A DNA stretch of 64,000 nucleotides from sequence record MW812342.1. One strand, given 5' to 3'. Positions 10,094-29,656 of the stretch are shown here, one piece after another. The first letter of the stretch is position 1, and the number at the start of each line of letters is the position of its first letter. Position numbers and translations under genes: made by a program. Below the pieces are notes generated by a model. It was given only the letters and a program-made list of their open reading frames with translations, did no database searches and was not told where the DNA came from.

Positions 10094-10693
10094 TTATTTA
10101 GAACATACGCCTACCTTGATAGCGTAGTCGCCCATTTCACGGTAGACGCGGTCATACCAACCGTACGTGAACTCTTCGTTCTGCACACGCTTCTCGGAAA
10201 TCTCGGTGTAGTACGACACCTGATGAGACGTCAGTGCGAACATCAGACGGTTGAAGCCGTCCAGACCACGGGCTTTCAGGAACCCTTCCAGCGCGGTCAT
10301 GGTTGCCGGGCCGATACCACCATCGGCATCGATGTCGGCGTACAGTTTACCCTGACGGTTCAATACGTTCAGGATGCGTTGCAGAGATTTGATGCAGTTA
10401 GCACGACCGGCGTTGATGCCAAAGTCGAACATACGGTCAGCCAAGAGCGGATTCCATGCGAGAATACGGTCAAGGCGCATACGGTCCCACCACCCTTTCT
10501 TGTAGATGTCAAGAGCCATCTGACGCGTCAGGTTACGCATGTCGCCGGTGTACCCGTTTTCACGCGCAGTGGCTTGTGTGATGCCGAAGTTGGTTGGGCC
10601 ACCCAAGTCGTTCGGGTTGTTAACATAACCGGCTTCGATGTTAACCTTGGCCGCAATGATGCCTTCCATACTCCAACGGTCTACAGTTGTCAT
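10094..10693 (-). CDS. Endolysin, glycoside hydrolase family 108 with C-terminal peptidoglycan-binding domain
   Basis: Catalytic-region motif EAGYVNNPNDLGGPTNFGIT, plus FDFGINAG, LQRILN, DGGIGPAT and GW..RV. The ATG at 10693 has SD GAGGA. Confidence 0.88.
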   Translation of the reverse strand: MTTVDRWSMEGIIAAKVNIEAGYVNNPNDLGGPTNFGITQATARENGYTGDMRNLTRQMALDIYKKGWWDRMRLDRILAWNPLLADRMFDFGINAGRANCIKSLQRILNVLNRQGKLYADIDADGGIGPATMTALEGFLKARGLDGFNRLMFALTSHQVSYYTEISEKRVQNEEFTYGWYDRVYREMGDYAIKVGVCSK

Positions 10694-10736
10694 AACATTT
10701 CCTCTAATAAAGAACAACAGTCATAACAACCGTAAG

Positions 10737-10776
10737 AAAAAAAAAGAAAAGCGACCCACCCCCGAAGGAGTGGGTA
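10737..10776 (-). terminator. Intrinsic terminator closing the radical SAM operon
   Basis: ACCCAC.CC-GAA-GG.GTGGGT hairpin with a long A-tract on the plus strand (U-tract on minus). Confidence 0.7.
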
Positions 10777-10780
10777 CGGC

Positions 10781-11437
10781 TTAGGCTACACCGTTATCCG
10801 CAGCAAGCTGCTTAATCGCGGTGAAGTCTTTTTGCTCCGTGAGGATACGGATGCGTTGTTTCAGCACCGACATGACCATGTGCAGGTCATTGTCACGCGT
10901 GATGATTTCCGCATAGAGGGCTTTCACGTCCTCCACCGTCCACGGCTCGATAGGCTCGTTGTTCAGCGTCATCCAGTACATAGGGTCAACCCCAGACTGA
11001 ATATAGCTTTGCATCGATTCGCGCGACTTCTCATCGGCTTGGAACGTCTTGTCACGGAACGCAATCGGTGCGTAGCGTTCTGCGTTATACTTGTCGTTCA
11101 GCTTCGGATAAATCGCATTGACTTCCTGATAGAGGTAGTTCTCCGTCGAGGTCAGCGCGGTACGTACTTGGTCTAAATCAATTTCCAGCACGTTCGCGAT
11201 GAAGTCTTTGGTCTTCTTCATCAGGAATTCAATTTCAACCGGCGACAGGTCGAAGCCTTTGAGTTTCTCGCGGGCTTTCTTGTCACTCATACCGTTAATC
11301 AGATGGTAGTGCAGCAGCAGGCAGAACCCGATACGGTTTTCCATCTGGTCTTGGTATTCTTCCACGTAGTTACCGTAGCGGTCGATACGCGTGCCCCGTT
11401 CGAAATAGCGGGCTTTTATTTCGTCGTTACTAAGCAT
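10781..11437 (-). CDS. DUF4376 domain protein (tail-fibre assembly/chaperone-like)
   Basis: The C-terminal FQADEKSRESM...W.TLNNEPI..T.ED...LY..I..R...LH...LK.RI pattern is typical of DUF4376, which usually lies next to tail-fibre genes. Confidence 0.65.
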   Translation of the reverse strand: MLSNDEIKARYFERGTRIDRYGNYVEEYQDQMENRIGFCLLLHYHLINGMSDKKAREKLKGFDLSPVEIEFLMKKTKDFIANVLEIDLDQVRTALTSTENYLYQEVNAIYPKLNDKYNAERYAPIAFRDKTFQADEKSRESMQSYIQSGVDPMYWMTLNNEPIEPWTVEDVKALYAEIITRDNDLHMVMSVLKQRIRILTEQKDFTAIKQLAADNGVA

Positions 11438-11973
11438 CCGGATTCTCCTGCAATCCCAAGGTCAACCAGCAGACCGAAGTCAATGAACTGGAAATCATTT
11501 TCCAACTCTTCACCCCAGAGCAGTTTGGCCTCTTCTGCTTCGTCGCCCATCTCTTCCAGCGTTTTGCGTGCCACTTCAAATTCGTGGTAGAACGCATCGG
11601 TCAGGTGAGTACCGCGCAGCGCACGGATAGTCACACCAGGGAAGTTCAGGGCCAATCCCACGACGTTGGTTGGGTCTGCATCGCCGGTAGAACGGCGCAG
11701 CACCTGCAACTTGTGTTTCGGGAACGCCACCACACGTTCTTCGAAACCGGGATTACGCTTCTCGATTTCGACAACAGACTGGTGGTCATCTTCCACGCCC
11801 TGTAAAGGCAGGATGACGTTCAGGCCATAACGGTTCAACAGACGAATGGTGTCATCGTTGAAATCTTCACCCGGCACGATCGCATGGATGTTGTACAGCT
11901 TGTGTTTGCGAAGAAACGCATCGACAAGGTGAACGTTACGCCGAGTAAAATTGTGAATCAGCAATGACTTCAT
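11416..11973 (-). CDS. Hypothetical accessory protein of the radical SAM cluster
   Basis: 185 aa; overlaps both neighbours, suggesting translational coupling; no family recognised. Confidence 0.6.
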   Translation of the reverse strand: MKSLLIHNFTRRNVHLVDAFLRKHKLYNIHAIVPGEDFNDDTIRLLNRYGLNVILPLQGVEDDHQSVVEIEKRNPGFEERVVAFPKHKLQVLRRSTGDADPTNVVGLALNFPGVTIRALRGTHLTDAFYHEFEVARKTLEEMGDEAEEAKLLWGEELENDFQFIDFGLLVDLGIAGESGCLVTTK

Positions 11974-13282
11974 TCGAGGCTCCGAGTTCTAATTTAAGTT
12001 TTTCTTTCTGCATACGGTCACGTACACAGCTCGCGCAATAACACATGGATTTGTCATGCAGGTCGGCGACATTCGTGGTACCGGTCTTCTGGTACCAGTA
12101 TTCGGACACCAACAGTTTCGCGGTCGTCCAACCACACTGGCGACGCTCAGCATGGTACTCTTTACGCGCTTCCAGCTCACCGTCACCGTTCTCGTAAGAC
12201 GCGGCCGCACAGCTACCACACGAGTGTTTCATCGGGCAACCTAAGCAGGTGGACGGGTAGTTGGTGTACTGCGTCTGGATTTCGTTCAGGAGCTTGTGAC
12301 CGTCAATGTTCACAATCTCACGCCCACGCAGTTCCGCGACTGCCGAACGGGTGGTTACGGTTGACATGAAGCGGTTACAGCCGTAGATCTTACGGTCGAA
12401 GCCGAGACAGGTCATGTGGGTCAGCGTACCGCAGTAAGGACGTACGCGGTCTGGGTGCAGACGGGTTGCTTCATCGTCCAGCAACTTCTGACGCCAGTCC
12501 GGGTCCCATGTCGCCATGAAGTCCAGCCCATCAGGAATGATGTGGGTCAGGATGTTACGTGGTGACTTGTGGTAGCCGTTGTCGACCCAGTAATCGATAA
12601 CGTCAATCATCTGGTTTGCAATACCCAGAGCCATATCGCGCGACAGGATGTCTTCGTACGTGACGTTACCGGAGATGGTACCACCGCCCGTTTCTTTAAT
12701 CAGGTGAATCATGCTCTCGCCGTAACGAGGCAGAGTTTCACCGGTAAAGGTGGCTTTGATACCGAGTTCTGCAATACCGACAGATTTCAGGTATTGGTAG
12801 CCGCGCATCGCCTGCTCGTACGAACCTTCACGCGACGTGGTGAAGATACGATAGCGGTCGTGCACTTCTGGCAGACCATCGATGGACACACCAATCGACA
12901 GGCGGTCTTTCCAGCGCTCAATGATTTCTTTGCTGATGGGACGGTCGAACAAGGTGCCGTTAGTAGAAATAGAGAATACGTACTGGCGGTTGTCGCGCGC
13001 CGCTAATTCTTCGGCTGTCTCAAAGACGGCTTTCAGAATCTTCGGCTGCATAAACGGCTCACCCCCGATGATGTCGATAATGATTTCGGCATCTTCGATG
13101 TGACGGTCGCGGTCAAAACACGCATGAATAAAATCGACAGCGTCATCCACTTTGTTGTTACGCGGATACTTACGTTCGTAGCAATACGAACAGTCGAGAT
13201 TACAAGACAGGTTAGTTACCACCTGATACGTGAGTGTGGGGCGCTGTTTACGCGTCTGCGATGTAGATCGTTCTTCGCTCAT
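11936..13282 (-). CDS. Radical SAM/SPASM peptide maturase
   Basis: It has CNLDCSYC (CX3CX2C), GGEPF, ISTNG and VSIDG. SPASM Cys array: YCG...C...GCNRF...CLGCPMKHSCGSC...C, with an extra C-terminal CYCASC. Confidence 0.92.
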   Translation of the reverse strand: MSEERSTSQTRKQRPTLTYQVVTNLSCNLDCSYCYERKYPRNNKVDDAVDFIHACFDRDRHIEDAEIIIDIIGGEPFMQPKILKAVFETAEELAARDNRQYVFSISTNGTLFDRPISKEIIERWKDRLSIGVSIDGLPEVHDRYRIFTTSREGSYEQAMRGYQYLKSVGIAELGIKATFTGETLPRYGESMIHLIKETGGGTISGNVTYEDILSRDMALGIANQMIDVIDYWVDNGYHKSPRNILTHIIPDGLDFMATWDPDWRQKLLDDEATRLHPDRVRPYCGTLTHMTCLGFDRKIYGCNRFMSTVTTRSAVAELRGREIVNIDGHKLLNEIQTQYTNYPSTCLGCPMKHSCGSCAAASYENGDGELEARKEYHAERRQCGWTTAKLLVSEYWYQKTGTTNVADLHDKSMCYCASCVRDRMQKEKLKLELGASNEVIADSQFYSA

Positions 13283-14172
13283 TTGATTACCTCATTGCGA
13301 TGTTTGCGAGCGTGAATCGTGCGATTGATGTAACGGTAGGCTTCTTGCCCAATGACTTTCGCCAGCATGTTACAGCCGCTATCGATTTCCATCTCGACAT
13401 CCATCGTGTAGCCGATAGACGCATCGGAGTCCAAGCGAACCAGACCACTGCACGCGTTGCACGACTGCTCAAAGAACTTGCTGATGGAAAACCCTGTTGA
13501 GCCATTGTTCATGACATTCAACCGTTCAATCTGGTCTTCCATTTTGTTGTAACCGAACATGAAGTTCATCACCAAATCTTGGTTCAGCGGTTTCTTCATG
13601 CGGTTGTCCAACAGCAGCGTCATGTCTTTGAAGCCGTAGTGGTAGAGTGCGCGGTGCAAGTCCAGCAAGTCAGTGTGCCAATATTTATCAGCCAACTGCT
13701 CACGAGTCACCACGGCCCACGTATGGACGTTGTTCAGCGCAGCCATCACTTCGAAGGCTTCGAATGCACCATCTTCAACGACACGCCAGAGCGGACGTTC
13801 GCTCTTTTTGTATCCATCGAACGACACACAGATACGGTTAAACTGTTGCAGCATCGGGAGGTGCTCCAGACGCATTTTCAGACCGTTCGTGTATAGCTCG
13901 TGAGTGAGATGCGGGTAACGGGCTTTGACCTCTGCCAGCAACGGCTCAATCTTGCGGGTTGCCATTAACGGCTCACCGCCCGTCCAGTTCATCCCTTGTA
14001 AAGTCGGGTACTTCTCCAGTTGTTCAAACAGCGCTTCACGCTGAATTTCCCGACCAACATCTTTTGTGTCCATGTAATACGCTCCGCCGCAGAAACTACA
14101 ATCCAAATTACACTTGGACGTCGTCACTATCGACAGCTCGGTAGGGGGACGTATTTGTGGTGCATCGGTCAT
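13279..14172 (-). CDS. Radical SAM protein (short, Twitch-like C-terminal Cys)
   Basis: It has CNLDCSFC, WTGGEPL, LYTNG and VSFDG, then C-terminal CNAC...GC. Its stop overlaps the start of the SPASM gene (ATGA). Confidence 0.88.
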   Translation of the reverse strand: MTDAPQIRPPTELSIVTTSKCNLDCSFCGGAYYMDTKDVGREIQREALFEQLEKYPTLQGMNWTGGEPLMATRKIEPLLAEVKARYPHLTHELYTNGLKMRLEHLPMLQQFNRICVSFDGYKKSERPLWRVVEDGAFEAFEVMAALNNVHTWAVVTREQLADKYWHTDLLDLHRALYHYGFKDMTLLLDNRMKKPLNQDLVMNFMFGYNKMEDQIERLNVMNNGSTGFSISKFFEQSCNACSGLVRLDSDASIGYTMDVEMEIDSGCNMLAKVIGQEAYRYINRTIHARKHRNEVIK

Positions 14173-14190
14173 TGCAGATTGCTCCAGTTT

Positions 14191-15069
14191 TTAATAGATC
14201 GCGAAAAGGGGGTCTTCCTCAAATTTCGCGCCCACATCCAACAGGAAATCGGAGTGGTAGGCTTCGAGAATTTGATTCAGAATCGCATGACGGTCGTTAA
14301 CCCGTTTGAGGTCATCGAGGGTCACGATTCGCGACTTGATGTTTGAAACTGCCTTTTCTTCGTCAGCTGTCAGGGAAACCTTCGTCAGAAGGAAACTCAC
14401 CAGCTTGCTCAGGTCAGCCTCGGTGCCCGGCGCTTCACCGTAACGCCACTGAACCAAGAACTGCATCCACGGTTTGCGGATACGGCGACTGATTTCGTGG
14501 GGGTCGGTAATCGCTTCGAACTGCTCATCTACCGCATTCCAGCGGAACTTGTAGCTGTACGCCAGCAAGTCGGCCAGACAATGGATACCGAGCGTTTCAT
14601 AACCTACGATGTGGTGGTATTTTTCCACACCTTTATATTCTTCCGTGCCGGTTGGTACTAAGGTGTACCAGAACGGGTTAGAAGACGGGTAGTCCCAGCT
14701 CCACTCGCGACGAACCATGGGAATGACGTCCAAATCCGCAAACGGCGTGAAGATCATTTCCAAATCCATCGAGTGGTTCAGGACTGCATCAGTAAAGAAA
14801 TACTTACCGTCAATCAGTCGGCCACTGGAGTTCAGCTCGCTTTCGTTAAACTTCACATGCTGAACGGTGTGCTTACCGATGGAGTAGGTATTCTCTTCGG
14901 TGTACTGCTTACGGACAATGTCCCGCCCACGTACCTTAGGCCATTCGCCTGGCAGCATCGAGATAAGGCGTACTTCGTCCGCGATGTGTGCTTTCACACT
15001 GTCGTACGACGAAATGTGTAACGGGAAATTTTGCGTCGTGCGGTACGCCAAATGGAGGTCGTTCTTCAT
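14191..15069 (-). CDS. Hypothetical accessory protein of the radical SAM cluster
   Basis: 292 aa with SD AAGGA, lying between the precursors and the first rSAM; no family recognised. Confidence 0.65.
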   Translation of the reverse strand: MKNDLHLAYRTTQNFPLHISSYDSVKAHIADEVRLISMLPGEWPKVRGRDIVRKQYTEENTYSIGKHTVQHVKFNESELNSSGRLIDGKYFFTDAVLNHSMDLEMIFTPFADLDVIPMVRREWSWDYPSSNPFWYTLVPTGTEEYKGVEKYHHIVGYETLGIHCLADLLAYSYKFRWNAVDEQFEAITDPHEISRRIRKPWMQFLVQWRYGEAPGTEADLSKLVSFLLTKVSLTADEEKAVSNIKSRIVTLDDLKRVNDRHAILNQILEAYHSDFLLDVGAKFEEDPLFAIY

Positions 15070-15087
15070 GGTTTCTTTATCCTTACT

Positions 15088-15297
15088 TTATCGGTTACCC
15101 GCGCCGTAACTGCACCCACCACTGCACGTCCAGCTACAGCTACCGCCGCAGTTATAGTGCGTAAGTGGAAGCCCAGCAAGGTTGTTGGTCGAACTGACCG
15201 TGCCGCGTGTGGCGATATAGTTGTTGGCCTGTGCGGTCGTGATGTAGCCTTCGACGCTTTGCACCCGATCGCGAATGTTTTTCAATGAGATTGCCAT
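15088..15297 (-). CDS. CXXX-repeat precursor peptide 3 (short core)
   Basis: 69 aa: leader MAISLKNIRDRVQSVE... plus core CGGSCSWTCSGGCSYGAGNR (4 Cys); SD GAGGA. Confidence 0.8.
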   Translation of the reverse strand: MAISLKNIRDRVQSVEGYITTAQANNYIATRGTVSSTNNLAGLPLTHYNCGGSCSWTCSGGCSYGAGNR

Positions 15298-15318
15298 AGG
15301 TCCTCACTCGATAGATTT

Positions 15319-15711
15319 CTATCGACTGCCTGAACAGCCAGAGCATCCCGTACAACTTGAACTACAGGAACCAGAACAGTTACCGGAGCACGTACCCGAA
15401 CAACCGGAGCACCCGCCCGAACACGAACCAGAACATCCTGAGCACCCACTGGTACACCCAGCAGTACAGCTCGACGAACAAGAGGAACCGCAGCTCCCTG
15501 ATGCCGAACCGGAACAGCCACCTGAACAGCTAGAACAACCCCAGCTACAGGTTCCGCCGCAATCGTAATGAACACGTCCTTGGCCGCCGAATAAGTCGAC
15601 GTTATTGGTTGCCTTACCACGAATGTAGGTTTGTACCCCACCTTCCGTTTTTAAGGCGTTCGCTTCGATCACCGCAATGCGATCCGCGAGGTTTCGTAAG
15701 TTGATAGCCAT
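15319..15711 (-). CDS. CXXX-repeat precursor peptide 2
   Basis: 130 aa: 50-aa leader MAINLRNLADRIAVIE... plus an 80-aa Cys/Ser/Gly core with 20 Cys; SD GGGAG. Confidence 0.82.
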   Translation of the reverse strand: MAINLRNLADRIAVIEANALKTEGGVQTYIRGKATNNVDLFGGQGRVHYDCGGTCSWGCSSCSGGCSGSASGSCGSSCSSSCTAGCTSGCSGCSGSCSGGCSGCSGTCSGNCSGSCSSSCTGCSGCSGSR

Positions 15712-15720
15712 TGTTGCTCC

Positions 15721-16110
15721 CTACTGTGGACCAGAGCACGCAGAACAACCGGTGCAGCTAGAAGAACATGACCCAGCGCAACCGCCGCCACACTTACCAC
15801 TGCACGATGACGCACAGGTACCTGAGCAACCCGAACAACCCGAACACCCACCACCGCAGTTAGAAGAACAGCTACCCACGCACGTAGAAGTACAAGTCCC
15901 TGCGCAGCTGGTACAGCTTGCAGAACACCCGTTAGAACACGACCAGCTACAACTGCCGCCACAATCCAGACGGGAGGGAGACCACCCACTGAACGAGTCC
16001 GCAGCGTTGTAAGCTTTCGATGCCACCTGCCCGTCTACACGGGGCCCGGTCGCATAGTTTGCTTCCACATTGTTAACGCGGTCGCGTATGTTTTTCATTG
16101 AAATTGCCAT
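15721..16110 (-). CDS. CXXX-repeat precursor peptide 1
   Basis: 129 aa: 49-aa leader MAISMKNIRDRVNNVE... plus an 80-aa core with 21 Cys; SD AAGGA. Confidence 0.82.
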   Translation of the reverse strand: MAISMKNIRDRVNNVEANYATGPRVDGQVASKAYNAADSFSGWSPSRLDCGGSCSWSCSNGCSASCTSCAGTCTSTCVGSCSSNCGGGCSGCSGCSGTCASSCSGKCGGGCAGSCSSSCTGCSACSGPQ

Positions 16111-16126
16111 ACGTTTCCTTTGTCAA

Positions 16127-16165
16127 TAAAAAAATGAGGACGCTGCCATAATGACAGCTCCTCAT
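16127..16165 (-). terminator. Intrinsic terminator between the fibre gene and the precursors, with TATG at the hairpin apex
   Basis: The minus strand reads ATGAGGA-GCTGTCA-TTA-TGGCAGC-G-TCCTCAT-TTTTTT. Confidence 0.7.
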
Positions 16166-16175
16166 GTAATAAGTG

Positions 16176-17381
16176 TTATCGTGAACCCGCTTCGGCCTGT
16201 ACGTCGTCGCGAGAAGTCAGGCTGCTGTTGACGTGTACCGCCGCCTGAACCACACCACCATATTGCTTGTGGAGATAGTTCGGGTGTGGGTTATCCGCGT
16301 TAACGTGGTTCTGGAGATTCTGCGACAGGGTGTTGATGGAGTTCTGCAACCCAGCAACTTGCTGTTTCAGTGCATTGAGCTGACCAGAGAGATCCTGAAT
16401 CTGCTGCTGCGTGTCGGAACCGGCGGCTTCCAAATCACTGATGCGCTGCTTGAGCCCATTGATGACTTGGTTTTGGTCGTTAACCATCTTCTGGAGTTGC
16501 AACACCAGAGAGTTCAGGTCAGCCTGTTGCAGAGCTGCCTTTTGGTAGTTCAACGCCACCGAGTTCAGCTGGTCGTTCCACGAACCGAGCGCATTGACCA
16601 CGGCGTCAATACGTGCCCCGAGAGCCGTGTCCGCTGCTTTCAAATTACCAATGTCCGCGAGGACAGCGTTGATGGCAGTCTGGACGGTTTGAATCAGCGC
16701 GCGGATTTCAGTTTCAGTGAGGCCATTCGCCTGATGAATGTCCAGTGCGTGAACGTTACCTTTGGCATCGATGTGCGATTGCAGCGCCGCCATCATCTGG
16801 GTTTGCATGTCAGTCATGGCTGCCAGAATCTGTTGGAGCTGAACTTCGTTACCGGAGTTAATCGCATCGGTCATCAACGCGAGCTGCGTGATGATGTATT
16901 CGAAACCAAACAGGTCGCCGAGGTCTTTAAAGGCCGGGGCGGCTGCAAAGGTATCCGGGACATTACGCAGGTCAGCAAAGTCAACTTTGCGGTCTTCAAG
17001 GTTGGCATCAGCCAACGCCTGTTTAATCGCAGAGATAACCGCCGACTGTGGCCCACCGACAACCTGTGCAAGACAGACGATGTCGGTTGGAATGGCCGGG
17101 TTAGTGACGACCACACCCATACAAATTTCGCGGTTCTTAGCGAGCTTCATGTACGCAGGGTGAATGTAAATCAGCTCGTAGTCGGTACCGCGTTTATAGA
17201 TGGTGTTGGGTTGGTTGGCAGGCCGCATACGGAACGTATCCGCAAAGAACGGCCCTGCTGGGAAAGCGAACGCACGGTTGACCTTCCCCCCACCTAACAC
17301 AACCGGGACATTGACCGCGTTACTGGACGCAGCCCCTGTCAGGTCAAGTGGGTATTGAAATAGAATATCTGGCATGGCCAA
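16176..17381 (-). CDS. Virion structural/tail-fibre-like protein with a long coiled coil
   Basis: 401 aa. It has the N-terminal Y.LD.TG...N / P.GPFF module shared with the giant fibres, a heptad-rich C-terminal half and H...NPH motifs. Confidence 0.7.
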   Translation of the reverse strand: MAMPDILFQYPLDLTGAASSNAVNVPVVLGGGKVNRAFAFPAGPFFADTFRMRPANQPNTIYKRGTDYELIYIHPAYMKLAKNREICMGVVVTNPAIPTDIVCLAQVVGGPQSAVISAIKQALADANLEDRKVDFADLRNVPDTFAAAPAFKDLGDLFGFEYIITQLALMTDAINSGNEVQLQQILAAMTDMQTQMMAALQSHIDAKGNVHALDIHQANGLTETEIRALIQTVQTAINAVLADIGNLKAADTALGARIDAVVNALGSWNDQLNSVALNYQKAALQQADLNSLVLQLQKMVNDQNQVINGLKQRISDLEAAGSDTQQQIQDLSGQLNALKQQVAGLQNSINTLSQNLQNHVNADNPHPNYLHKQYGGVVQAAVHVNSSLTSRDDVQAEAGSR

Positions 17382-17422
17382 ACTCCCTTAGTGAGACGTC
17401 CTTGTCTCGACGTGTTAGATGG

Positions 17423-20400
17423 TTACGGCAACTTAGGCATAAGATTGACCGTCAGTTTCGACGGGGTTACCGTTCCGCCATAAAAGTTGACGCCGTTACC
17501 GATGTACAACGCATTGTCCGCAATCATCACTGGGATGTGTTGGCTGAAGACAACGTCCCCATGCACAATCGGGAAATAGTCATCGATGGAAACCCCCGCA
17601 GGCATCGCAACTTTATAAACTTCCAGCACACCGCCGGTGATGCGGGCAACGGAACCGCTTACGTTCGTTGCAGCACGAATCCCCACGGTGGACGCGTCAG
17701 AGGTATAGAACACTGTCGCTGTGCCGTTATCCACGTTTGCGATGCTGAACGCGGCGAAGGAAGCAGCTTGTCCACCGGTGATGCCATCAAACACAAACGT
17801 GTTTTTGACACCGACTTCCGCCTGAAGCGTGACTTCTGCCAATTGAGAAGAGACCCTCGTGGTGACGCCGAGGTTCGCGTTGGTAAATCCGATGGTGCCG
17901 GAACCCAACGTGTAACCCGGTTTCAGTTTGATTTTCACCGTCGGGGTCGACGGCGTCACTTCCACGATCATTCTCCATGCAATCGAATTGACAGCCGACA
18001 TCCCCGGTATACCCACTGAGTACCCGTTATCCACGTCTGAAACTTGACCAACATTGGCCCCTTTCATCGTGAACTTCTTGTAGTCTTTAGGTAAGGTAGA
18101 TGTCAGTGCATCGCGAAACAGCTCGATGGGCACCTTGTGACTTTGTGCAGCAAAGACGCCGCCAATCAACGAGACATCCAGATAACCGCCAGCGGTGGCC
18201 GCAGGTGCAGCAAGCGGTTGTTTACGCAGCAGGCCCAGACGAGAAAGGCGCGCTTCACTGTCCACATTCACATCGTGACTGTATACGGTTTCGGCGTGCT
18301 CCGTCAGCTGCTTCAATTCACCGAGGCGTTTCACTTTCGTGAACTCACTCGACAGAATACGCTGACTGTCTGTTACCACCGTCCCGATGAACAACCGGGT
18401 ACTGGTATCTGGCAGGCGTTCGGTCAGCAGCTGGTATTCCGGCTTCCCGTTGACTACCGCAGCGTGCATGTAGAACGTGCGGTTTTGATACGCACCGGGG
18501 AACAACGTCTTAATGTTCTGGTTGTACGCATCCAACGTGTAATAGTCGGAGCCGAACCGTAAGCTCTCCGACTCGGTGATGTACAACTCCCACCCTTCGG
18601 CTGTTTTTACCCCGGCCACAATCTCGAACGGTCGAGCGGTCGGTACCCATCCCGGCACATTGGCCATGTACTCCTCAGGAGTCGCGGCTGGGCCAGCAAG
18701 GTAGGCCGGTGAGACGTAGGCTTGGTTTGTACGAGCAAGCTTATTACCGACAATCGTCAACTGCGTCGGGTTGTAGTAATACGCTGAACTCAACATCGTC
18801 GCACCAGTCTTAACGAGCTTCGACCCGTTTAAGGAGAAGATCATCTCAAAATGCTTCGACCCCGCGCCCCCAACCACGTTGTACTGATACACGTTTGGCA
18901 AATGCAGGAAGCCGGTACCATCACCTTTCTCGTAAAAGATAGGCTGCGTGTAACGTTGGTTGTGGTAGTGGTAGTACGTGATGCTCATTGCCGTAATAGA
19001 CGGCTCGGCAATGTTGACGCCGTACACCAAGTCGGTGGTGGTTATCGGGAAGGTTACTGTTGAACCCGACACGGTAGGGTAAATCTGGAACAGGTAGTAG
19101 TCGACGAAACGGCTGCTGTTGCGGTCACTCTTCACCGCCACCTGCACCAACCAAATTGGCTTGGCATCCTTCGGACGAATCGCCCACACCGAGAACTGTG
19201 GATCAGCCCCTGCGTTGATGTACTCGTTCGCGTATGCGTTTGCCGCCCCAGACGGTGCTTGTGACTTAATGGTGCTGATAAGCGTGTTCCAGTCGCTTTG
19301 GCTAATCGTCAGCACGTCAGCCGTTGGGCTGTCACCCACCGCTTGGTAGTTCTGACTGCCCGGCGCTGTCCAGTAAGCACCATGTGGTTTCCCGTTTTGC
19401 AGGGTACCGGATGCACACCACGTCATGTTCCCCAGCTTGTAATACTTCGCAAGGTCAAACGCGCGACGTACGTTAGACGGGCCTAACCCACCAAAGTCCG
19501 GCGAGTAGCGGGTGTTCGGGTCAGTCTCGACATAGACCGCGCTGGTCTCGGTAATCGGAGCCAGCAGGTAGGCGTTATTACCGAGGTATACCGCCCCACT
19601 GTACCCGACCTTCAACACCGACCCTACACCGCCGTCAAATACCCACAAATCCACCTGATTCATACCGTAGGCACTGTGGGCCTCCAGATGGTCAAACAGC
19701 GAACGGGTATCATCACCCACTTTGCAGCGGGCAATGCCTGTCTGCGTGGCAGCATCACCGGGGTCAAAGTACGTCCAGAAATACGGGCTGTCATCCGTGG
19801 GGTAAACGTGGGTACGGCTGTTGGCTTGGCCGTATGGCCATTTCGTCTGGAACCCTTTGGCGTGCAGCTCCTCCCCGGTGGCGAGATACAACCCATCAGC
19901 ATCAATCTTCAGTGGGAAAATCTCCGGGTTCTCCAGCGTGACTGCGAACGAATCCATATCGACCACATACGACGACGGCCACACGGTAAACGGATACGAC
20001 CCGTCGGCATTCGCCAAATAGATTGTACCGACCACACCCACACGCAAGGTCGCGTTTTTCAATGCGACACCGGCATGCGTCTGTGGACCATGTGCAATGT
20101 TACGCACCTGCCACTTTGCCAGCCCTGCTGCCGTCACTGTCGACAAACCGTTCGCCACCACCGTGGTGGAACCGGGGTCAATTGGTTGACGCAGGTTCAC
20201 AAAGACACCTTGACGGCTGCTACCACCGGTTAATGCCACAGAGGCAAACGTGATGGTTTTGTTGGCGTTGACCGTACCGACCAACATAAAGGTGCGGTAA
20301 TAGTTGTTGGTGATTTCCATACGCAGGATATACACCCGGTCTTTGTAGACCACAACATGATCCGTCGATTGGTTCGGGCTGTAGTTAAACGTAGAACCGG

Positions 20401-22444
20401 AGCCGGGCAGATCGGTTGGGAAGGTCGTCTGCCACACACGCAGGTGCTTCTTCTGGTTCAGCGTCCCGTCGAACATGACGGTGTAATAGTTGTTGTCTGT
20501 TCCCAGACACACCATCGCATCTTCGCCACACACGACGATCGCCACCAGAGCCACCCCAGGGTACGCACTCAAGCCTGCCGGTTGATAAACGTTCGAGGTT
20601 TGCTGGCGTTTAACCATTTTCCCCGCGCTGTCAATCGGAGCGTAAGAGTAATAGATGTGGTCCGTATTCGGTAAGCCGTCGTTGGCGTTCCGTAAGGCAT
20701 ACACCGTATCCCCTTCCTGCTTAATCACGCCCAGTGACTGTGCCGGACTATAACGCTTGGCAAACCCTGCGTAGTTTCCAACCGCCGGGATAGGCAGGTA
20801 GCCGGGATTACCGTAAGCTGCACCACCGGTCGTCCACGACGGCATCAGACCGTCCAGCACACCTTTGTACTCATTCAGGCGTTGCTGCACGTTGTAACCC
20901 TGCTTAGACGTCACCACTTTATCCGTGGTGGCATCAATCGCATCCCACAGCTGCAACAGACCCGCATCCGTATCGGACGCAGTTGGGACACCTGTCAGGT
21001 CAGCGAACGTGTGCGTGTGGTTAGCCAGCGCTTTATTTGCCAGCACTGCACGAATCGCGTTGGTCAGCGGTTTCTCAGCAGGTGCTGTGTTGTTGATGTT
21101 CCCCACACCCACATCCGCGGTCGTCAGGGTGAGGGATTGGGTGGTACCGTTATCAACGAACTTCTTCCCGTTAATGGTGTACGTGTTATCCACGTAATCG
21201 TCCAGTGTCTTTTTCAGGACGTTAACGGCGTACTGCGAAATCGCGGTACCGGAAGAGATGTTGGCAGACAGGTTGGTAATGGCAAACAGACCCGGCACCT
21301 TGTCGGTTGCGGTAGGCAGTTGCGCATTCATGGTCAATGGGGAAGACTGCTTAGCGGTACCGAACGCTTTGATGGTATCCGTTGAAGCAAAGTAGGCGTT
21401 CCCCGGTAGCAGTTTTACTTCAGACAGGTACAATGAGACCATATCCGGTGTAACTAAGTAGGCACCGTTAAAGATTGGTGCAACTGCGCCATTGAGCACA
21501 TACGCGGTGTTCAAACCGGAACCCAGCTCAACACCCACGCCCCGTTCATTGCTGTCTGCATCGGCAGTGATGTTAATGGCACGGGTGGTGGTGATAAGGA
21601 ACTTGTCACCTTGCAAGGTAATGACGTGGCTGGAGTCGGCGGTACGGAATGTCAGGGCACCGTTGTTCAGCACCTTGAGGCGACCACGCAGTTCGCCGAG
21701 TACCACCGGCATCAGGGTGTCGATGTGTGCCTGCTGAATGCCGTTTGTTTTCATGATGGCGACTAACTCGTCCAGCGTCTTACCGAACGCCTTCGTTGAG
21801 TCAATTGCCTTGGTCAATACTTTTAACGCCCCAATCTCATCAGCCGTGTACTGGTGTGCGTTTTTGATACGGTGGTGACTGTACAGGTTGTCATCGAAAA
21901 TCTTTTTACCGTTGGCAAAAATCAAATCGGTGACTCCGGTGTACGCCGCATCCATTTCCCCTGCGCGTTTAATCAAACCCTGACGGATGTCGTCCAGCGC
22001 TTTAACCACCTCGTCACGCAGCAATGCTTCGTCCAGGTTGGCAGGCGGGTCGATTGCAGGAATCACTGGCGCATAACGCATCAGTTCAGACCAGTCGGTG
22101 TTACGTGGGTCTTTGATGTCCTCTTTTACTAAGAACTTACCAATCTCGGTTTGTGGCACGCGGTATTCACGGCCAACGGAATAGATTGTGTAGTCAACGG
22201 AGGTGTCCCCGTTAATCAACATAATCCCGCCGTAGATTTGGTCTTTCATTGCGACAGCGGCTTCTTTGTAATAGTAGCCGAGGTAGTAATCCAGACCCTC
22301 AATAAGCTTTACGCCTGCGCTGTTCTTCAGCTCAAGCCCGGTACGGAAGAACGGCCCCTCAGGAGGGATGACCACATTGTATTTGTTCGGATACGTGGTC
22401 GTCAGTAGCGTACCGGTAAATTTGGCTACGTTCGTGCTCGCCAT
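17423..22444 (-). CDS. Giant tail-fibre-like virion protein 3
   Basis: 1673 aa; PPEGPFF N-terminus, fibre motifs (DVGVGNINNTA..KP, HTH, PTA...G) and a large beta-rich insert. Confidence 0.7.
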   Translation of the reverse strand: MASTNVAKFTGTLLTTTYPNKYNVVIPPEGPFFRTGLELKNSAGVKLIEGLDYYLGYYYKEAAVAMKDQIYGGIMLINGDTSVDYTIYSVGREYRVPQTEIGKFLVKEDIKDPRNTDWSELMRYAPVIPAIDPPANLDEALLRDEVVKALDDIRQGLIKRAGEMDAAYTGVTDLIFANGKKIFDDNLYSHHRIKNAHQYTADEIGALKVLTKAIDSTKAFGKTLDELVAIMKTNGIQQAHIDTLMPVVLGELRGRLKVLNNGALTFRTADSSHVITLQGDKFLITTTRAINITADADSNERGVGVELGSGLNTAYVLNGAVAPIFNGAYLVTPDMVSLYLSEVKLLPGNAYFASTDTIKAFGTAKQSSPLTMNAQLPTATDKVPGLFAITNLSANISSGTAISQYAVNVLKKTLDDYVDNTYTINGKKFVDNGTTQSLTLTTADVGVGNINNTAPAEKPLTNAIRAVLANKALANHTHTFADLTGVPTASDTDAGLLQLWDAIDATTDKVVTSKQGYNVQQRLNEYKGVLDGLMPSWTTGGAAYGNPGYLPIPAVGNYAGFAKRYSPAQSLGVIKQEGDTVYALRNANDGLPNTDHIYYSYAPIDSAGKMVKRQQTSNVYQPAGLSAYPGVALVAIVVCGEDAMVCLGTDNNYYTVMFDGTLNQKKHLRVWQTTFPTDLPGSGSTFNYSPNQSTDHVVVYKDRVYILRMEITNNYYRTFMLVGTVNANKTITFASVALTGGSSRQGVFVNLRQPIDPGSTTVVANGLSTVTAAGLAKWQVRNIAHGPQTHAGVALKNATLRVGVVGTIYLANADGSYPFTVWPSSYVVDMDSFAVTLENPEIFPLKIDADGLYLATGEELHAKGFQTKWPYGQANSRTHVYPTDDSPYFWTYFDPGDAATQTGIARCKVGDDTRSLFDHLEAHSAYGMNQVDLWVFDGGVGSVLKVGYSGAVYLGNNAYLLAPITETSAVYVETDPNTRYSPDFGGLGPSNVRRAFDLAKYYKLGNMTWCASGTLQNGKPHGAYWTAPGSQNYQAVGDSPTADVLTISQSDWNTLISTIKSQAPSGAANAYANEYINAGADPQFSVWAIRPKDAKPIWLVQVAVKSDRNSSRFVDYYLFQIYPTVSGSTVTFPITTTDLVYGVNIAEPSITAMSITYYHYHNQRYTQPIFYEKGDGTGFLHLPNVYQYNVVGGAGSKHFEMIFSLNGSKLVKTGATMLSSAYYYNPTQLTIVGNKLARTNQAYVSPAYLAGPAATPEEYMANVPGWVPTARPFEIVAGVKTAEGWELYITESESLRFGSDYYTLDAYNQNIKTLFPGAYQNRTFYMHAAVVNGKPEYQLLTERLPDTSTRLFIGTVVTDSQRILSSEFTKVKRLGELKQLTEHAETVYSHDVNVDSEARLSRLGLLRKQPLAAPAATAGGYLDVSLIGGVFAAQSHKVPIELFRDALTSTLPKDYKKFTMKGANVGQVSDVDNGYSVGIPGMSAVNSIAWRMIVEVTPSTPTVKIKLKPGYTLGSGTIGFTNANLGVTTRVSSQLAEVTLQAEVGVKNTFVFDGITGGQAASFAAFSIANVDNGTATVFYTSDASTVGIRAATNVSGSVARITGGVLEVYKVAMPAGVSIDDYFPIVHGDVVFSQHIPVMIADNALYIGNGVNFYGGTVTPSKLTVNLMPKLP

Positions 22445-22475
22445 GAAAAAACACTCCTACGTATTGATAAAAGGT

Positions 22476-22495
22476 TACCGCCCTTTCGGGCGGTA
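22476..22495 (-). terminator. Hairpin/terminator between fibre genes
   Basis: TACCGCCC-TTTC-GGGCGGTA (GAAA loop on the minus strand) followed by a short U-run. Confidence 0.55.
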
Positions 22496-22530
22496 GCTTG
22501 CGGGTAACACGCCCGCAAGCGTGCACCCCT

Positions 22531-25500
22531 TTATACCCACTGACCGAGGTCAGTTCCATCTGTCGTGCGTTCAGCGTCCATTTTATCCTGCAACACTTTC
22601 CACAACTTCGTGGTCATGTGCAGCGGGTTAATCCTTTTCGCTGTGTAGCGGTCAGCCACGAACCACATCGTATCCGCCACGGTAGCTTCCGTTATCGTGG
22701 TGAGCAATGTCCCGCCAGTATCGTAGAGTTCGTACGTGAACTCCAGCGTCAGCGGATCAGGTGTGTACCCCGGCAAGTAAGCCAGTTGGAGTTTTAACCC
22801 CCCGCGCCGTGCCGAGACCGGAACGCTGATTTCGCCCGCGACGGGTGAACCGTAGGCCACATTCACCACCTGTCCGCCGATAGCAATCTGACGTACCGCA
22901 TTGGCCGCTGAGCCTTTGACGATTTTCAGTTTTGCTACTTTGGAAGGTTGTGGCAGGTTGTAATCAAGCATCAACCCAGCGACAAGGAAGTTGGTGCCAT
23001 CGCTGCTGCCGTATTTCCCAAACCAGTTGCCGTTTGTAACAACAGAATGTGCCGATTGAAGCAGCGCATCCCGGTTAAACGCCAACGGCAGGTAACCTGC
23101 GTGTGATGCGTGGAATGAACGGCAACCCATCGGCACTAACTGGTATTCGGTGTACCGCATGTCCGGCGTGTACACGCCCGCAGGTAACACCACGGTCGCA
23201 TTCTTAACCGGTGTGCTCGGTAACACCCCAGAATCGGCGTAGGACTCGAACAGTGAACGCAGGTACTGGTATTTGTCTTCTGACATACCGATGCCGTCTA
23301 ACGGTGCAACTGAACCGAGCAATGTACAAGTGCTGGCACCCCCTGCGAGTGGCGGAAGTTCAAGCCCAACAAACCCGCCCATCAATCCACGAATGTCCAC
23401 ATCAAACTGAATATCGAGTTCATTAATGACGAGTGGCACATCATTGTCAGTTGGGTTGCCGGGGAAGAACACACTGAACACCGAAAGCTTGCGCAACGTG
23501 ACATTGTACGTGTACCGCACTGCCAATCGCGGAGAGCCCGCTTTCAGGCTCGTCAAGTCCATCACACCCAATACCGAGGCCGCTTCGTTCTTTCTGACCG
23601 ACGTGGTTTTGGAATAGAGCACGTTGGACTCAAATGTCGGAAGCGTTGCCAACACGGCAGCGTGGGAAACGATAGAGGTCGCGTATCCGTAGTCCGGCTC
23701 GGTTGCACCATCGAGTGGCACGCGCAGATAACGGTTACGGTAATCGGTACTCTCATTCCCCAACACCGGTGAAGCAAACAACAACGTTGGTATCGGATGA
23801 GTAAACAGGCCATTCGTCTGGTACTCATCGTACACCAACCCGCCTTGGAACGTCGCTGCACCACCCAGCTTTGGATTCGACGGGGTGTACCACCACTGGG
23901 GTGTCTGCTCCGTAGTCTCCAGCAGCATATACGCTTTGCGGGTGGTGCTGTTACGGGACATCTGCGCCAAGCCGTAGATATTGTCATACCCTGCTGACAT
24001 TTCGCCGTACATTGCTGACGGGGAATTAAAGCGGAGCTTGCCGATGGGTAACATCGTCGGGTTATCCGTCAGTACCCAGTCAAGGGCCACCGGGATATGT
24101 TGCTGCAAACTGGCAATGTGATCAGCCGCTTCGTTGGAGATCCCGTAATCGTGCATCTTCGGGAAACTGATGGTCGATGTAGCAATGCCACCCGCAGGCG
24201 CATCGACAACACCAATCAATGCCGTTTCCGGTGACACCTCATTGGTCAGTTGCGGCTCAGCACGGCTGTACATGGATTGTGTTACCATGTTCAGGTACAG
24301 GTAATGCCGGTTACCAAACGTCGGCGTCATGAACTCCCCGAGCTGGGCAATCGGCGTTCCGACGTCACTGCGGTAAATTGGCAGAGCCTCGTCGTACACC
24401 TCGAAGGCCATCGCTGCTGCCTTAGTCGGGTCGTTACAATCCGCACGAATCCCCAGACAGGCAGACTGCTTCGCAGAATTCACATCGACTTCCAAGAAGA
24501 ACGGTGAATTACCCGTACCCACTTGCTGACCGTCCAGATAGACCGTTACCTTACCACCTGCCACGATATACAGCCGCAGCGTGCCTGTGTACGATTTTAA
24601 GCGCAGTTTAGACAGCAGGGAGATAACGGACAGGTCACCCATCCCGTTGGCTTTCAGGCCGATTGGGACGGCTTTTAAAGCAAACTTCGGTTGGGACGAG
24701 ATACCAGTGAAGTCAAGGTTCGCCAAGACGTTTTTTACCGCAGGCGTCCAGTTACGCTCCATCGTGTTGTTCGGGCTGAACCAGTTGAACATCGGGGTGG
24801 TTTCGAGGTTAATCGAGCCACTCACTTTACCTTCCGCCCGGTCATTCCCCCGCAGATAGAAATACTGGAGGTCTTTGACTTGCAGAATCCGACCGGACGC
24901 AACCGACCACGTCGAGGCATCGATGATGGAAAAGTCTGTCGACACCCCGGACCTCACCGATTTCAACGCTGCACTAATCACATCCAAACGATCGCTCAGG
25001 CGTTTCAGGACATTCGGTGTCACACCTTTATTGGCGACCAGACCATCGTCCAAATTGGTATACCGACCCAGACCCTCGGTGAGGTTCGTTGCCAGCGGCA
25101 AGTTTAAGGACGCGAACGTGTGTTTGTGCCCTTTATCGCTTAGCCCATCCATCGCGGTAGACTGGTCAGCCGATACCGGTTTATCGAGGTCGGCGGTGTT
25201 ATCCGCTTGGCCCAGGCCGATGTCTGCTTTTGTCAACACGCGTGCACCGTCATCCATCGGTTTGGAGTTGAGCATGGTGGTTTTTGCCACGTAGCCCGAC
25301 GCCTTACCTTCGTACGGCTGCAACGAATCCGGGGTCGATGCAACACCCGTGGTTTCGTCACCCACACCGGATTTCAATACTGCGGTGCCTTTTACGGTAC
25401 CGGTAGCGGTGGGGAGTGACAGCGTGGCTTTGACCGGATCGGCTTTTGACCCTTTACCGGTTACCGAAATCCCCCCGCGGCCTTGGACGTAAATCTTCTG

Positions 25501-26610: not shown

Positions 26611-26620
26611 TTGCTTCTCC

Positions 26621-29600: not shown

Positions 29601-29656
29601 TCACCGGTAATTTTATTACCCGGTAATTTTTGATGCGGGTCAAAGACGACAGCCAT
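26621..29656 (-). CDS. Giant tail-fibre-like virion protein 1
   Basis: 1011 aa; PKNGPFY N-terminus; NNPHG; LGSVENISD..PVS.AQ; HTH; paralogous to the two downstream giants. Confidence 0.7.
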   Translation of the reverse strand: MAVVFDPHQKLPGNKITGEPGTVIGTKYRMLVPKNGPFYTGSLVVKSAGKVLKLGADYVITHPYMTSMQRTGRATHGMVWIINPDYTQNFTLDYHAVGIGAGTTAQVNAERDRNKDVFPSECQWEMVIGDVYFPPVDIQFDWENWKGERELMTAIAAIGKKLAQVPANSDGSDVLTILKKYHELVDRLYRTSPAIAHVTDKNNPHGDDSYGRMRAIETNGIADDATLVYGRTQAQLATYVNGLSAKAADFTDKMLRTGAARTITGTFTMLPGLSSITSSKDAESNGVGTNLQVDDKAVRVLARDNIRVSAGNQPITFTAGANTFVLYPDSRGLRWNNKILLDPTTVGQYLPGNSGGGDGVYYGANSTTVTITGNGIETQPFILTFVPPSDSDVNTLAMRLLTSEFGDSQSLAATPALIKKLAQTFTGKLEKARAYINGVSLASSVTIDKYTLNLGSVENISDDTLPVSTAQATEFAKYAQVGHTHDAPAFSIGSATTAKAGLIRYGGLVNDATLALDGSYVVQQLKDVAKLEAVQDNSDPNAVIDILRYGDSGNGAIQAAVTVTGWMVSIKANNYFVGRDYTVPLTTFNVAELFPASHEDTTFGIFVDIVDNAAVYVIKDSANLAESETMTRIGDILTDEDGVVSASVRNVTRLGDYRELTDHAADVNAHTPRAITQADFGYSYGKEGISWAGGSGSVNTVGSDWREFSVDGLTALAAGYPTDEGFRVTSTFRAGWVNLTPLSYVDGVGVNIVPEVNGVSGDGVLHLLAYKKGNGFRTLSLAVTTSGINSPAGNRVNLALCGNWGAVGPTPGFTLGIDESRYAVASSFDRLNPRLTYGINRGPNIVMTGTVSLINYTLKYTVTLSATASTMVIERTDTGAKSTTDITSRLAAADFDVALLLNTPEKPIYFGIGASLSNTAKIKLSYTGSQFNAQHKYVSALDYLNNYSELGRVRIYEGVAGNSQAIDLKKSVIANSIAAAQWADGLPSAINYVGMDLQLVGSNYKAIVFRD

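Follow-up and report, generated by a model that had tools for sequence, protein, structure and literature searches.

What are three small, Cys-rich proteins doing beside a pair of radical S-adenosylmethionine (rSAM) enzymes in a jumbo phage: are they precursors of released peptides, or parts of the virion? The question is raised by a 64,000-nucleotide stretch of record MW812342.1 (hereafter "the window", to which coordinates refer unless another locus is named), which comes from Erwinia phage pEa_SNUABM_10 (MW812342), a 239-kb jumbo phage of the SPN3US-like group. Three paralogous genes on its minus strand, here called A, B and C, each encode a head of about 50 amino acids (aa) ahead of a Cys-repeat tail. 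The reading we favour, and hold to be a little better than evenly likely, is that the trio consists of small structural proteins of the fibre type, whose tails are cross-linked by the adjacent rSAM enzymes, and not classical secreted peptides made by the ribosome and modified after translation (RiPPs). Two findings speak for it. By sequence homology, the heads of A, B and C correspond to the end of a tail-fibre shaft and are not typical RiPP leaders, and the Cys-repeat module strictly co-occurs with a pair of rSAM genes. A first-pass annotation of this DNA had described the three proteins as precursors made of a leader and a Cys-rich core; comparison of the sequences supports a non-repeat N-terminal part, a Cys-repeat part and a role as targets of the adjacent rSAM enzymes, with the enzymatic action itself left as a deduction.

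The genes on which the argument turns are the following.

15721-16110, minus strand: type A Cys-repeat protein, 129 aa, with a 49-aa fibre-shaft-like head, the motif CGGSCSW and an 80-aa tail carrying 21 Cys
15319-15711, minus strand: type B Cys-repeat protein, 130 aa, with a 50-aa head and an 80-aa tail carrying 20 Cys and one in-register Ala
15088-15297, minus strand: type C short paralogue, 69 aa, with a 49-aa head, the CGGSCSW junction and 4 Cys
14191-15069, minus strand: 292-aa accessory protein (phrog_8030), always found between the Cys-repeat gene or genes and the rSAM genes
13279-14172, minus strand: small rSAM enzyme, 297 aa, with CX3CX2C at residues 21, 25 and 28 and three C-terminal Cys (238, 241 and 267)
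11936-13282, minus strand: large rSAM enzyme with SPASM-type Cys, 448 aa, with CX3CX2C at residues 27, 31 and 34
11416-11973, minus strand: 185-aa cluster-less protein (phrog_7988), with a predicted fold similar to the partial TIM barrel found in rSAM maturases

The three Cys-repeat genes

Substitution patterns between related phages show that the frames of A, B and C are coding, and that the genes are real and constrained. Bases 11000-18000 of the window match pEa_SNUABM_10 at 100% identity, Machina, Huxley, Parshik, pSal-SNUABM-04 and pEa_SNUABM_42/43 at 94-95%, and pEa_SNUABM_6 at 89%. Relative to pEa_SNUABM_6, 100 of 115 nucleotide differences fall in third codon positions (42/51 in A, 32/35 in B and 26/29 in C), and 95 of 108 changed codons are synonymous (38/45, 32/35 and 25/28, respectively). 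This third-position bias led us to reject the possibility that the three are artefacts of a Cys/Ser/Gly-rich antisense frame. A purine-rich ribosome-binding site (RBS) precedes each gene, and all three proteins match a single PHROG family, phrog_6085, with E values of 1e-29 to 1e-50.

When the tail is counted from its first Cys, the heads of A, B and C are 49, 50 and 49 aa long, as first described, and the tails are 80, 80 and 20 aa long with 21, 20 and 4 Cys. The cores had been said to begin with (D/N)C and to measure 80 aa; the equal length of A and B stands if counting starts at the Cys, and the wording is otherwise off. All three proteins share the N-terminus MAI-x-(L/M)(K/R)N(I/L)xDR(V/I)xx(V/I)E, all three tails open with (D/N)CGG(S/T)CSW(S/G/T)CS, and A and B share the ending CSSSCTGCS(A/G)CSG, in agreement with the first-pass annotation. 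Its count of 21 registers in both long proteins also survives, with 21 Cys in A and 20 Cys plus an in-register Ala in B. The single 7-residue Cys gap of B (CSGSASGSC) places this Ala at the exact site of a Cys in the B proteins of CR5, EarlPhillipIV and Phobos (7 = 3+1+3), so the 21st register of B is real.

The tails consist of CXXX and CXX units of Ser, Gly and Thr; Asp and Glu are absent, there is no more than one Lys/Arg cleavage site, and regularly spaced Cys make up 25% of the residues. A non-repeat head of 49-50 aa followed by such a tail gives A and B what looks, on paper, like the layout of a RiPP precursor. The DNA of the three genes holds weak, short repeats only. Tandem Repeats Finder returned nothing beyond 2-copy arrays, on which ground recent repeat expansion was rejected; the periodicity of the peptides is therefore old and written in diversified codons, not the product of a recent slippage array.

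Family models are of little help with these proteins. A, B and C gave nothing when scanned against Pfam and NCBIfam, even at E 10; the PF27846 model seems to be absent from the Pfam set scanned, and fibres labelled PF27846 and the Cys-repeat protein P0004 likewise gave nothing in the same scan, which makes this null result uninformative for PF27846. A word-indexed protein search with A returned four matches only, because gene callers usually miss Cys-repeat open reading frames (ORFs). Antisense or wrong-frame ORFs are annotated over A or B in several GenBank records, among them those of pEa_SNUABM_6, Huxley, Phobos and Caitlin. The misannotated spots are window 15282-16012 on both strands and, among the compared loci and contigs that we designate by L numbers, L002 (7787-8029), L006 (7425-7760) and L016 (2058-2795). 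In SPN3US itself none of the three genes is correct: SPN3US_0166 lies in the wrong frame of B, and A and C are unannotated. Published SPN3US proteomes therefore could not have detected A, B or C. A term search for gp162 to gp167 in the SPN3US supplementary text found no occurrence, which says little about detection.

To describe variation in the trio, A, B and C were extracted from 20 GenBank phages and 16 IMG/VR contigs of the SPN3US-like group and from three far more distant metagenomic phages, a set that covers the genera Machinavirus, Erskinevirus, Seoulvirus, Derbicusvirus and Wellingtonvirus. All three genes are present in each of the 36 SPN3US-like loci, and the trio is retained in every lineage that carries the module in this split form. 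Type A has 21 Cys in all 36 loci (20 GenBank and 16 IMG/VR) and a tail of 78-84 aa; the differences in length are switches between CXX and CXXX units, and the CXXC at Cys 5-6 is kept in all of them. In type B the registers number 21 (20 Cys plus Ala, or 21 Cys), with the exception of Wellingtonvirus, where there are 23 Cys in 92 aa. Type C always ends about 12-21 aa past the junction and keeps 4 Cys or, in Derbicusvirus, Wellingtonvirus and the distant phages, 2. It is a truncated form in every locus, as expected of the cap-like subunit that the third precursor had been taken for.

The exact 80-aa ruler that had been read into A and B holds only in the closest Machinavirus group. Elsewhere the A/B tail lengths are 78/81-82, 81/83-84, 82/82, 84/83 and 83/92 aa. 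The wider idea, that the cores are under structural constraint and do not drift freely, is borne out for the number of Cys registers and fails for the exact core length; judged from the alignments, constraint acts on how many Cys units there are, not on length. The tails of distant lineages have 59-88 aa and 15-22 Cys, with A/B pairs of 19/21, 15/16 and 21/22. Taken over the whole set, the Cys counts of A and B track each other (21/21, 21/23, 19/21, 15/16 and 21/22), a co-variation that leans largely on one short/short lineage. A hetero-oligomer of A, B and C in a 2:1 or 1:1:1 arrangement would be compatible with these sequences.

Fibre homology and the enzyme cassette

The large rSAM enzyme has its nearest cellular relatives (31-39% identity) in the tail modules of prophages. 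In a P2-like prophage of Campylobacter pinnipediorum, the gene order is baseplate W/J/I, fibre, a 250-aa protein, two rSAM enzymes, DUF1353 and a sheath gene, and the fibre combines a Phage_tail_fib N-terminus (Pfam, E 2e-40) with a C-terminal run of CXXC/CXXXC. Deferribacter abyssi has a 302-aa fibre with HxH repeats, then a 250-aa protein, then two rSAM genes. The Deferribacter fibre carries the segment NADQLGGQAGSYYRCSDCSWTCSS right ahead of about 100 aa of CXX(X) repeats; its end reads NADQLGGQAGSYYRC-SD-CSWTCSS, after which the repeats begin. Both 250-aa proteins are homologous to the 292-aa family by hhalign (Deferribacter, 98.3%, E 2e-14; Campylobacter, 88%, E 3e-6).

With the Deferribacter junction as its seed, a search brought up 27 further fibre-like proteins of 185-476 aa; the features seen among them include collagen repeats, extended coiled coils and motifs typical of fibres. 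Every one of the 27 ends in ...NAxxL(D/N/G)G....(Y/H)Y(R/D)C...CSWTC... followed by a module with 12-34 Cys, and 12 carry a precomputed PF27846 ('tSAM_targ_Cxxx_rpt') assignment. We refer to these proteins, in which the Cys module is part of the fibre, as fused fibres. Three of their contexts were checked: one with a T7-like terminase, one a tail module of siphovirus-like type that encodes a GpJ-like protein and a GH108 endolysin, and one with a DnaB-like gene. In all three the fibre gene is followed by an accessory protein with the hallmark motifs of its family and then by rSAM genes.

A hidden Markov model (HMM) of the junction was built from the 52-aa pre-repeat segment of the 27 fused fibres only, with the repeats excluded, and was compared with all 808 six-frame ORFs of the window. 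It matched B (E 7e-11, over most of the head), C (E 4e-10) and A (E 1e-4), and no other ORF. Since 12 of the 27 source fibres bear the PF27846 assignment, the match also lends indirect support to placing A, B and C with the PF27846 targets. The homology is confined to the heads of A, B and C and the last ~45 residues before the fibre Cys module. It follows from the HMM and the fused fibres that the head represents the last coiled-coil-like stretch of a shaft plus the 'NAxxLxG' motif, and that the Cys repeat represents a C-terminal fibre module. The head had earlier been seen either as a leader that binds a RiPP recognition element (RRE) or as the seed of a trimeric coiled coil. The first idea is not supported, as no RRE was detected in any cassette protein; the second fits the head better, given that a model of the fibre pre-repeat junction matches A, B and C alone.

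A second Cys-repeat subtype, with an N-terminal domain of about 100 aa and no CSW junction, was observed beside a single large rSAM gene at L020 (1829-2479, P0004), L046 (7103-7870) and L133 (4430-5023). The L020 copy follows an ORF with a tail-fibre-like C-terminus, and the L133 copy lies in a 30-kb human-gut phage scaffold. When contigs were scanned with the large-rSAM alignment, the generic CNLxCxYCY motif dominated and the matches were mostly unrelated SPASM enzymes of 22-37% identity; Cys-repeat ORFs appeared in that scan only in L046-L048 and L065.

By tblastn the 292-aa protein was found in 62 phage records and the large rSAM enzyme in 63, all but one SPN3US-like, and the 292-aa family has only 23 members among 1.8 billion representative proteins. 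Three distant contigs keep the order A-B-C, 292-like protein, small rSAM, large rSAM and a ~175-aa protein. The 292-like proteins of distant cassettes have 19-33% identity, and PF27846 is precomputed on the B-type protein of one of these cassettes. For the distant 292-like genes that were looked up, rSAM genes adjoin wherever the contig extends past the gene; the short contigs L131 and L132 stop at the 292-like gene, and no rSAM gene is visible there. An extra small rSAM gene (303 aa) lies between A and B in the SPN3US-like IMG/VR loci L022 (2392-3303) and L023, which retain the usual copy as well.

Both rSAM enzymes have the CX3CX2C motif and pass Pfam PF04055 (56.5 and 43.8 bits, against a gathering score of 29.5). 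In the large enzyme, Cys 284, 302, 346, 349, 355, 358 and 383 are invariant in 24 homologues and agree with the seven-Cys SPASM pattern. JGI names its homologues 'with 4Fe4S-binding SPASM domain', and the Pfam scan reported no SPASM match for it. Its best families are TIGR04115 (E 2e-36) and PapB (NF047865, E 4e-36), and its best solved structure is CteB (5wgg, E 2e-12). No Pfam or NCBIfam RRE family was found in any cassette protein. The large enzyme can be said to lack the N-terminal RRE of about 100 aa because its CX3CX2C starts at residue 27 and the alignment with CteB starts at CteB residue 105; an RRE is not obligatory for RiPPs. Pfam, NCBIfam and PHROG scans found no protease or transporter families among the cassette proteins.

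Structure prediction adds something for the two remaining proteins. The AlphaFold2 model of the 292-aa protein is confident, with a predicted local distance difference test (pLDDT) score of 88. The model of the 185-aa protein (pLDDT 89) has as its best PDB folds the partial barrels of SkfB, ChlB, SuiB and CteB, and QueE (probability 0.97-0.99). The protein lacks the cluster-binding (CX3CX2C) Cys, and in the distant contig L042 the gene after the large rSAM gene encodes a homologue (24% identity, E 8e-8). With modest confidence, based on the model, we regard it as a putative degenerate, cluster-less rSAM-like subunit.

What the trio may be

We infer that the rSAM enzymes act on A, B and C, that the chemistry is that of thioethers, that the proteins are present in the virion and that they form a hetero-oligomer. 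In the mechanism that we propose, the head, a short heptad-like segment followed by 'NAxxLxG....Y-x-C', would probably serve for oligomerisation or docking. In the fused versions, the form that the module takes in most other phages, it would be part of a trimeric fibre, presumably a homotrimer; in the SPN3US-like jumbo phages the module would have been split off as two long paralogues and one cap-like paralogue, for which an A:B:C assembly is possible. The nearly invariant Y-x-C..CSW junction may be a common recognition or nucleation element, because C retains nothing of the tail beyond it. The two rSAM enzymes, with the 292-aa and 185-aa proteins, would use the Cys of the CXXX/CXX units to make cross-links, for which Cys-derived thioethers of the sactionine or ranthionine type are the likeliest candidates. 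Thioethers are our best guess because PapB, CteB, SCIFF (six cysteines in forty-five residues) and CXXX-repeat maturases make them and because SPASM rSAM enzymes can act on whole Cys-rich proteins. Such links would staple the tails covalently into a rod or tip on the baseplate-fibre apparatus that withstands proteases and heat. A more detailed version is tentative, and we are more inclined to doubt it than to accept it: an A:B:C hetero-trimer, nucleated by the head and the C..CSW element and capped by C, with the A and B tails paired 21:21 and multiply stapled by thioethers, the C-termini of fused fibres being stapled likewise.

Several observations weigh against the view of A, B and C as cross-linked fibre-type proteins. 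The large rSAM enzyme scores far under the curated cut-offs of its best families (TIGR04115, 126.5 against 350 bits; PapB, 125 against 340), so their chemistry cannot be transferred to it with confidence. The tails have no Asp; the acceptor is therefore not Asp, and a PapB-type acceptor is absent. The 292-aa protein offers no functional clue, in that a PDB sequence search and PDB and BFVD fold searches gave nothing outside its own family, and we therefore claim no RRE, protease or chaperone role for it. The Foldseek E values of the rSAM-like fold of the 185-aa protein are marginal (2e-3 to 2e-2). At the end of the gene string, the homologue of the DUF4376 protein in SPN3US, gp161, is a reported member of a 20-member family of head-protein paralogues, and the DUF4376 gene is for this reason not counted as a firm part of the system. 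In the distant phage L039, the cassette lies among non-structural genes (Acb2-like and nucleotidyltransferase-like).

That cassette, outside a tail module, would suit classical phage RiPPs, from which a leader of about 49 aa is cut off and whose Cys-rich cores are released as bioactive peptides in competition, host manipulation or anti-defence. The layout of head and tail beside SPASM-type rSAM enzymes related to sacti- and ranthipeptide maturases is also what such precursors would have, and CXXX-repeat peptides of 62-79 aa do occur near related rSAM enzymes in Firmicutes (L047, L048 and L065). We nevertheless think this explanation improbable. The cassette is kept over very large distances with no protease, exporter or RRE, which disfavours a released RiPP; homology ties the supposed leader to the ends of fibre shafts, and in many phages it is continuous with a full fibre of 185-476 aa; type C is nearly coreless; and the genes have a tail or baseplate placement in jumbo, P2-like, siphovirus-like and T7-like-terminase contexts.

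Cys at a quarter of the tail residues and in regular spacing might instead point to scaffolds that bind metal or Fe-S clusters and undergo no covalent modification, in the manner of metallothioneins or of the His-metal sites of fibre needles; the rSAM enzymes would then act elsewhere, or the tails would donate clusters to them. The Deferribacter fibre does pair HxH repeats with its Cys module, and metal ions are found on the trimer axis in fibre tips of other phages. We consider such scaffolds distinctly improbable, however. The Cys module occurs strictly with two rSAM enzymes and the accessory protein across unrelated phage types, and an enzyme-substrate relation is therefore indicated; the curated families nearest to the large rSAM enzyme are defined as maturases of such repeats; and a number of Cys such as 21 is not divisible by 4.

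That A, B and C are assembly factors only, helping the giant fibres as transient templates of trimerisation or as chaperone-like caps and absent from the mature particle, is very improbable in our estimation: although the genes come just after fibre or virion genes, the usual place of fibre-assembly genes, C has the appearance of a cap and the trio is without a proteomic record, that gap is explained by misannotation and by tails without Lys or Arg, the module of the fused versions belongs to the fibre polypeptide itself, and, for a factor that is discarded, a pair of rSAM enzymes would be costly.

Neighbouring genes and known systems

The cassette is part of a long minus-strand gene string that runs from giant genes of 1011, 1359 and 1673 aa through a 401-aa gene to A, B and C, the 292-aa gene and the 297-aa rSAM gene, and continues with the 448-aa rSAM, 185-aa and 218-aa DUF4376 genes, a hairpin and a GH108 endolysin gene. 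Its other features are listed here.

17423-22444, minus strand: 1673-aa baseplate/tail-fibre candidate, counterpart of SPN3US gp168 by synteny alone
16176-17381, minus strand: 401-aa coiled-coil virion structural protein (SPN3US gp167 homologue, phrog_2163), directly upstream of A
16127-16165, minus strand: 14-pair hairpin with U7 (dG -19.6 kcal/mol, z -2.65), in the gap that separates the stop codon of the 401-aa gene from the RBS of A
10781-11437, minus strand: 218-aa DUF4376 protein, the final gene ahead of the terminator, of uncertain membership in the system
10754-10775, minus strand: terminator-like hairpin, 9 pairs followed by a T-run, which closes the minus-strand gene string

The three minus-strand giants (1673, 1359 and 1011 aa; 17423-29656) occupy the place of the SPN3US baseplate/fibre paralogue family C (gp168-170). 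The 1011-, 1359- and 1673-aa ORFs are thus placed as baseplate/fibre candidates, putative counterparts by synteny of gp170, gp169 and gp168, respectively. An amber mutation has been found in SPN3US gene 168, which was designated 'expected essential'. Near position 30000 the G+C content falls from about 0.54 to about 0.49 and the main coding strand changes from minus to plus at 29.7-31 kb, a switch that probably marks the border of a module.

The 401-aa protein ends in a segment of ~40 residues (HPxYLxKxxGGxVxxxxHV..L....DV.A; window 16176-16300) that recurs at the end of a 129-aa protein directly upstream of A in the distant contig L038 (3318-3707). The similarity hints that this segment is a partner or docking site for the heads of A, B and C. 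The hairpin at 16127-16165 could, from its predicted fold, act as a terminator, an attenuator or an RNA-stability element that sets expression of the cassette; a terminator consensus scan missed it because of a bulge. At the far end, the cassette is followed by a DUF4376 protein in the window (10781-11437) and again in the distant contig L129 (3463-4125). An endolysin with GH108 and PG_binding_3 domains is encoded just downstream of the cassette terminator (10094-10717, minus strand), and the siphovirus-like contig L127 has this pair of domains just past its rSAM cassette, about 4.5 kb downstream of the fibre gene.

Cys-repeat targets of SPASM rSAM enzymes as such are already known to database curators (TIGR04115, PF27846). 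In the searchable literature we found no description of a Cys-repeat module at the C-termini of phage tail fibres, of its fixed pairing with a second rSAM enzyme and an accessory protein of 250-300 aa, or of the split form with three paralogues and 21 Cys in SPN3US-like jumbo phages. We know of no described fibre domain that is a Cys-repeat C-terminal module served by rSAM enzymes. If A, B and C and the C-termini of the fused fibres are cross-linked by rSAM enzymes, RiPP-type radical chemistry, unusual in the construction of a virion, would harden or shape the adsorption apparatus of phages. The result would be a previously undescribed, covalently cross-linked fibre tip, the first rSAM-dependent maturation of a virion structural protein, in a module widespread across jumbo, P2-like, siphovirus-like and T7-like-terminase contexts. 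The 'orphan' pairs of rSAM genes, remarked on for a long time in SPN3US-like genomes, would also acquire a function, and RiPP/rSAM enzymology would be linked with phage structural biology, fields that have so far been apart. SPN3US offers amber-mutant genetics and virion proteomics, and the idea can be tested directly in that phage; misannotation of A, B and C in many records makes existing proteomic searches blind to them.

Among known systems, the CXXX-repeat rSAM-target systems (TIGR04115, PF27846) have in common with the phage cassette a Cys-repeat substrate beside a SPASM-type rSAM enzyme, and TIGR04115 is the best NCBIfam match. The phage cassette differs from them in having two rSAM enzymes, the 292-aa accessory protein and a cluster-less protein predicted to fold much like an rSAM barrel, and its substrates are three paralogues with a fibre-shaft-like head in a tail/baseplate module. 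PapB/freyrasin and CteB/thermocellin (ranthipeptide/SCIFF-type) share the rSAM core and the SPASM Cys pattern. Unlike CteB, the phage enzyme has no N-terminal RRE; PapB links Cys to Asp in CX3D motifs, whereas the phage tails contain neither Asp nor Glu.

A protein substrate has a precedent in Methanococcus voltae, where the SPASM rSAM enzyme CrpC is reported to put thioether cross-links on the Cys-rich protein CrpA and N-terminal protein domains of CrpA to guide engagement (PMC13692751). CrpC/CrpA resembles the phage system in that the substrate is a protein rather than a short peptide, which is why we cite it in favour of A, B and C as cross-linked structural proteins; it differs in its unrelated substrates and organisms, in having no phage or fibre context and in using one rSAM enzyme only. 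QhpD/QhpC is a second example of thioether cross-links on a protein.

On the side of phage structure, P2-like Phage_tail_fib fibres share with A, B and C the head, which is homologous to the segment before the fibre Cys module, and T4 gp37 is an example of a fibre needle stabilised by metal. As in phage fibre modules generally, A, B and C come after baseplate/fibre genes and an accessory gene follows them, in the manner of fibre-assembly genes; they differ from such modules in that the Cys-repeat module is detached from the fibre as three small proteins.

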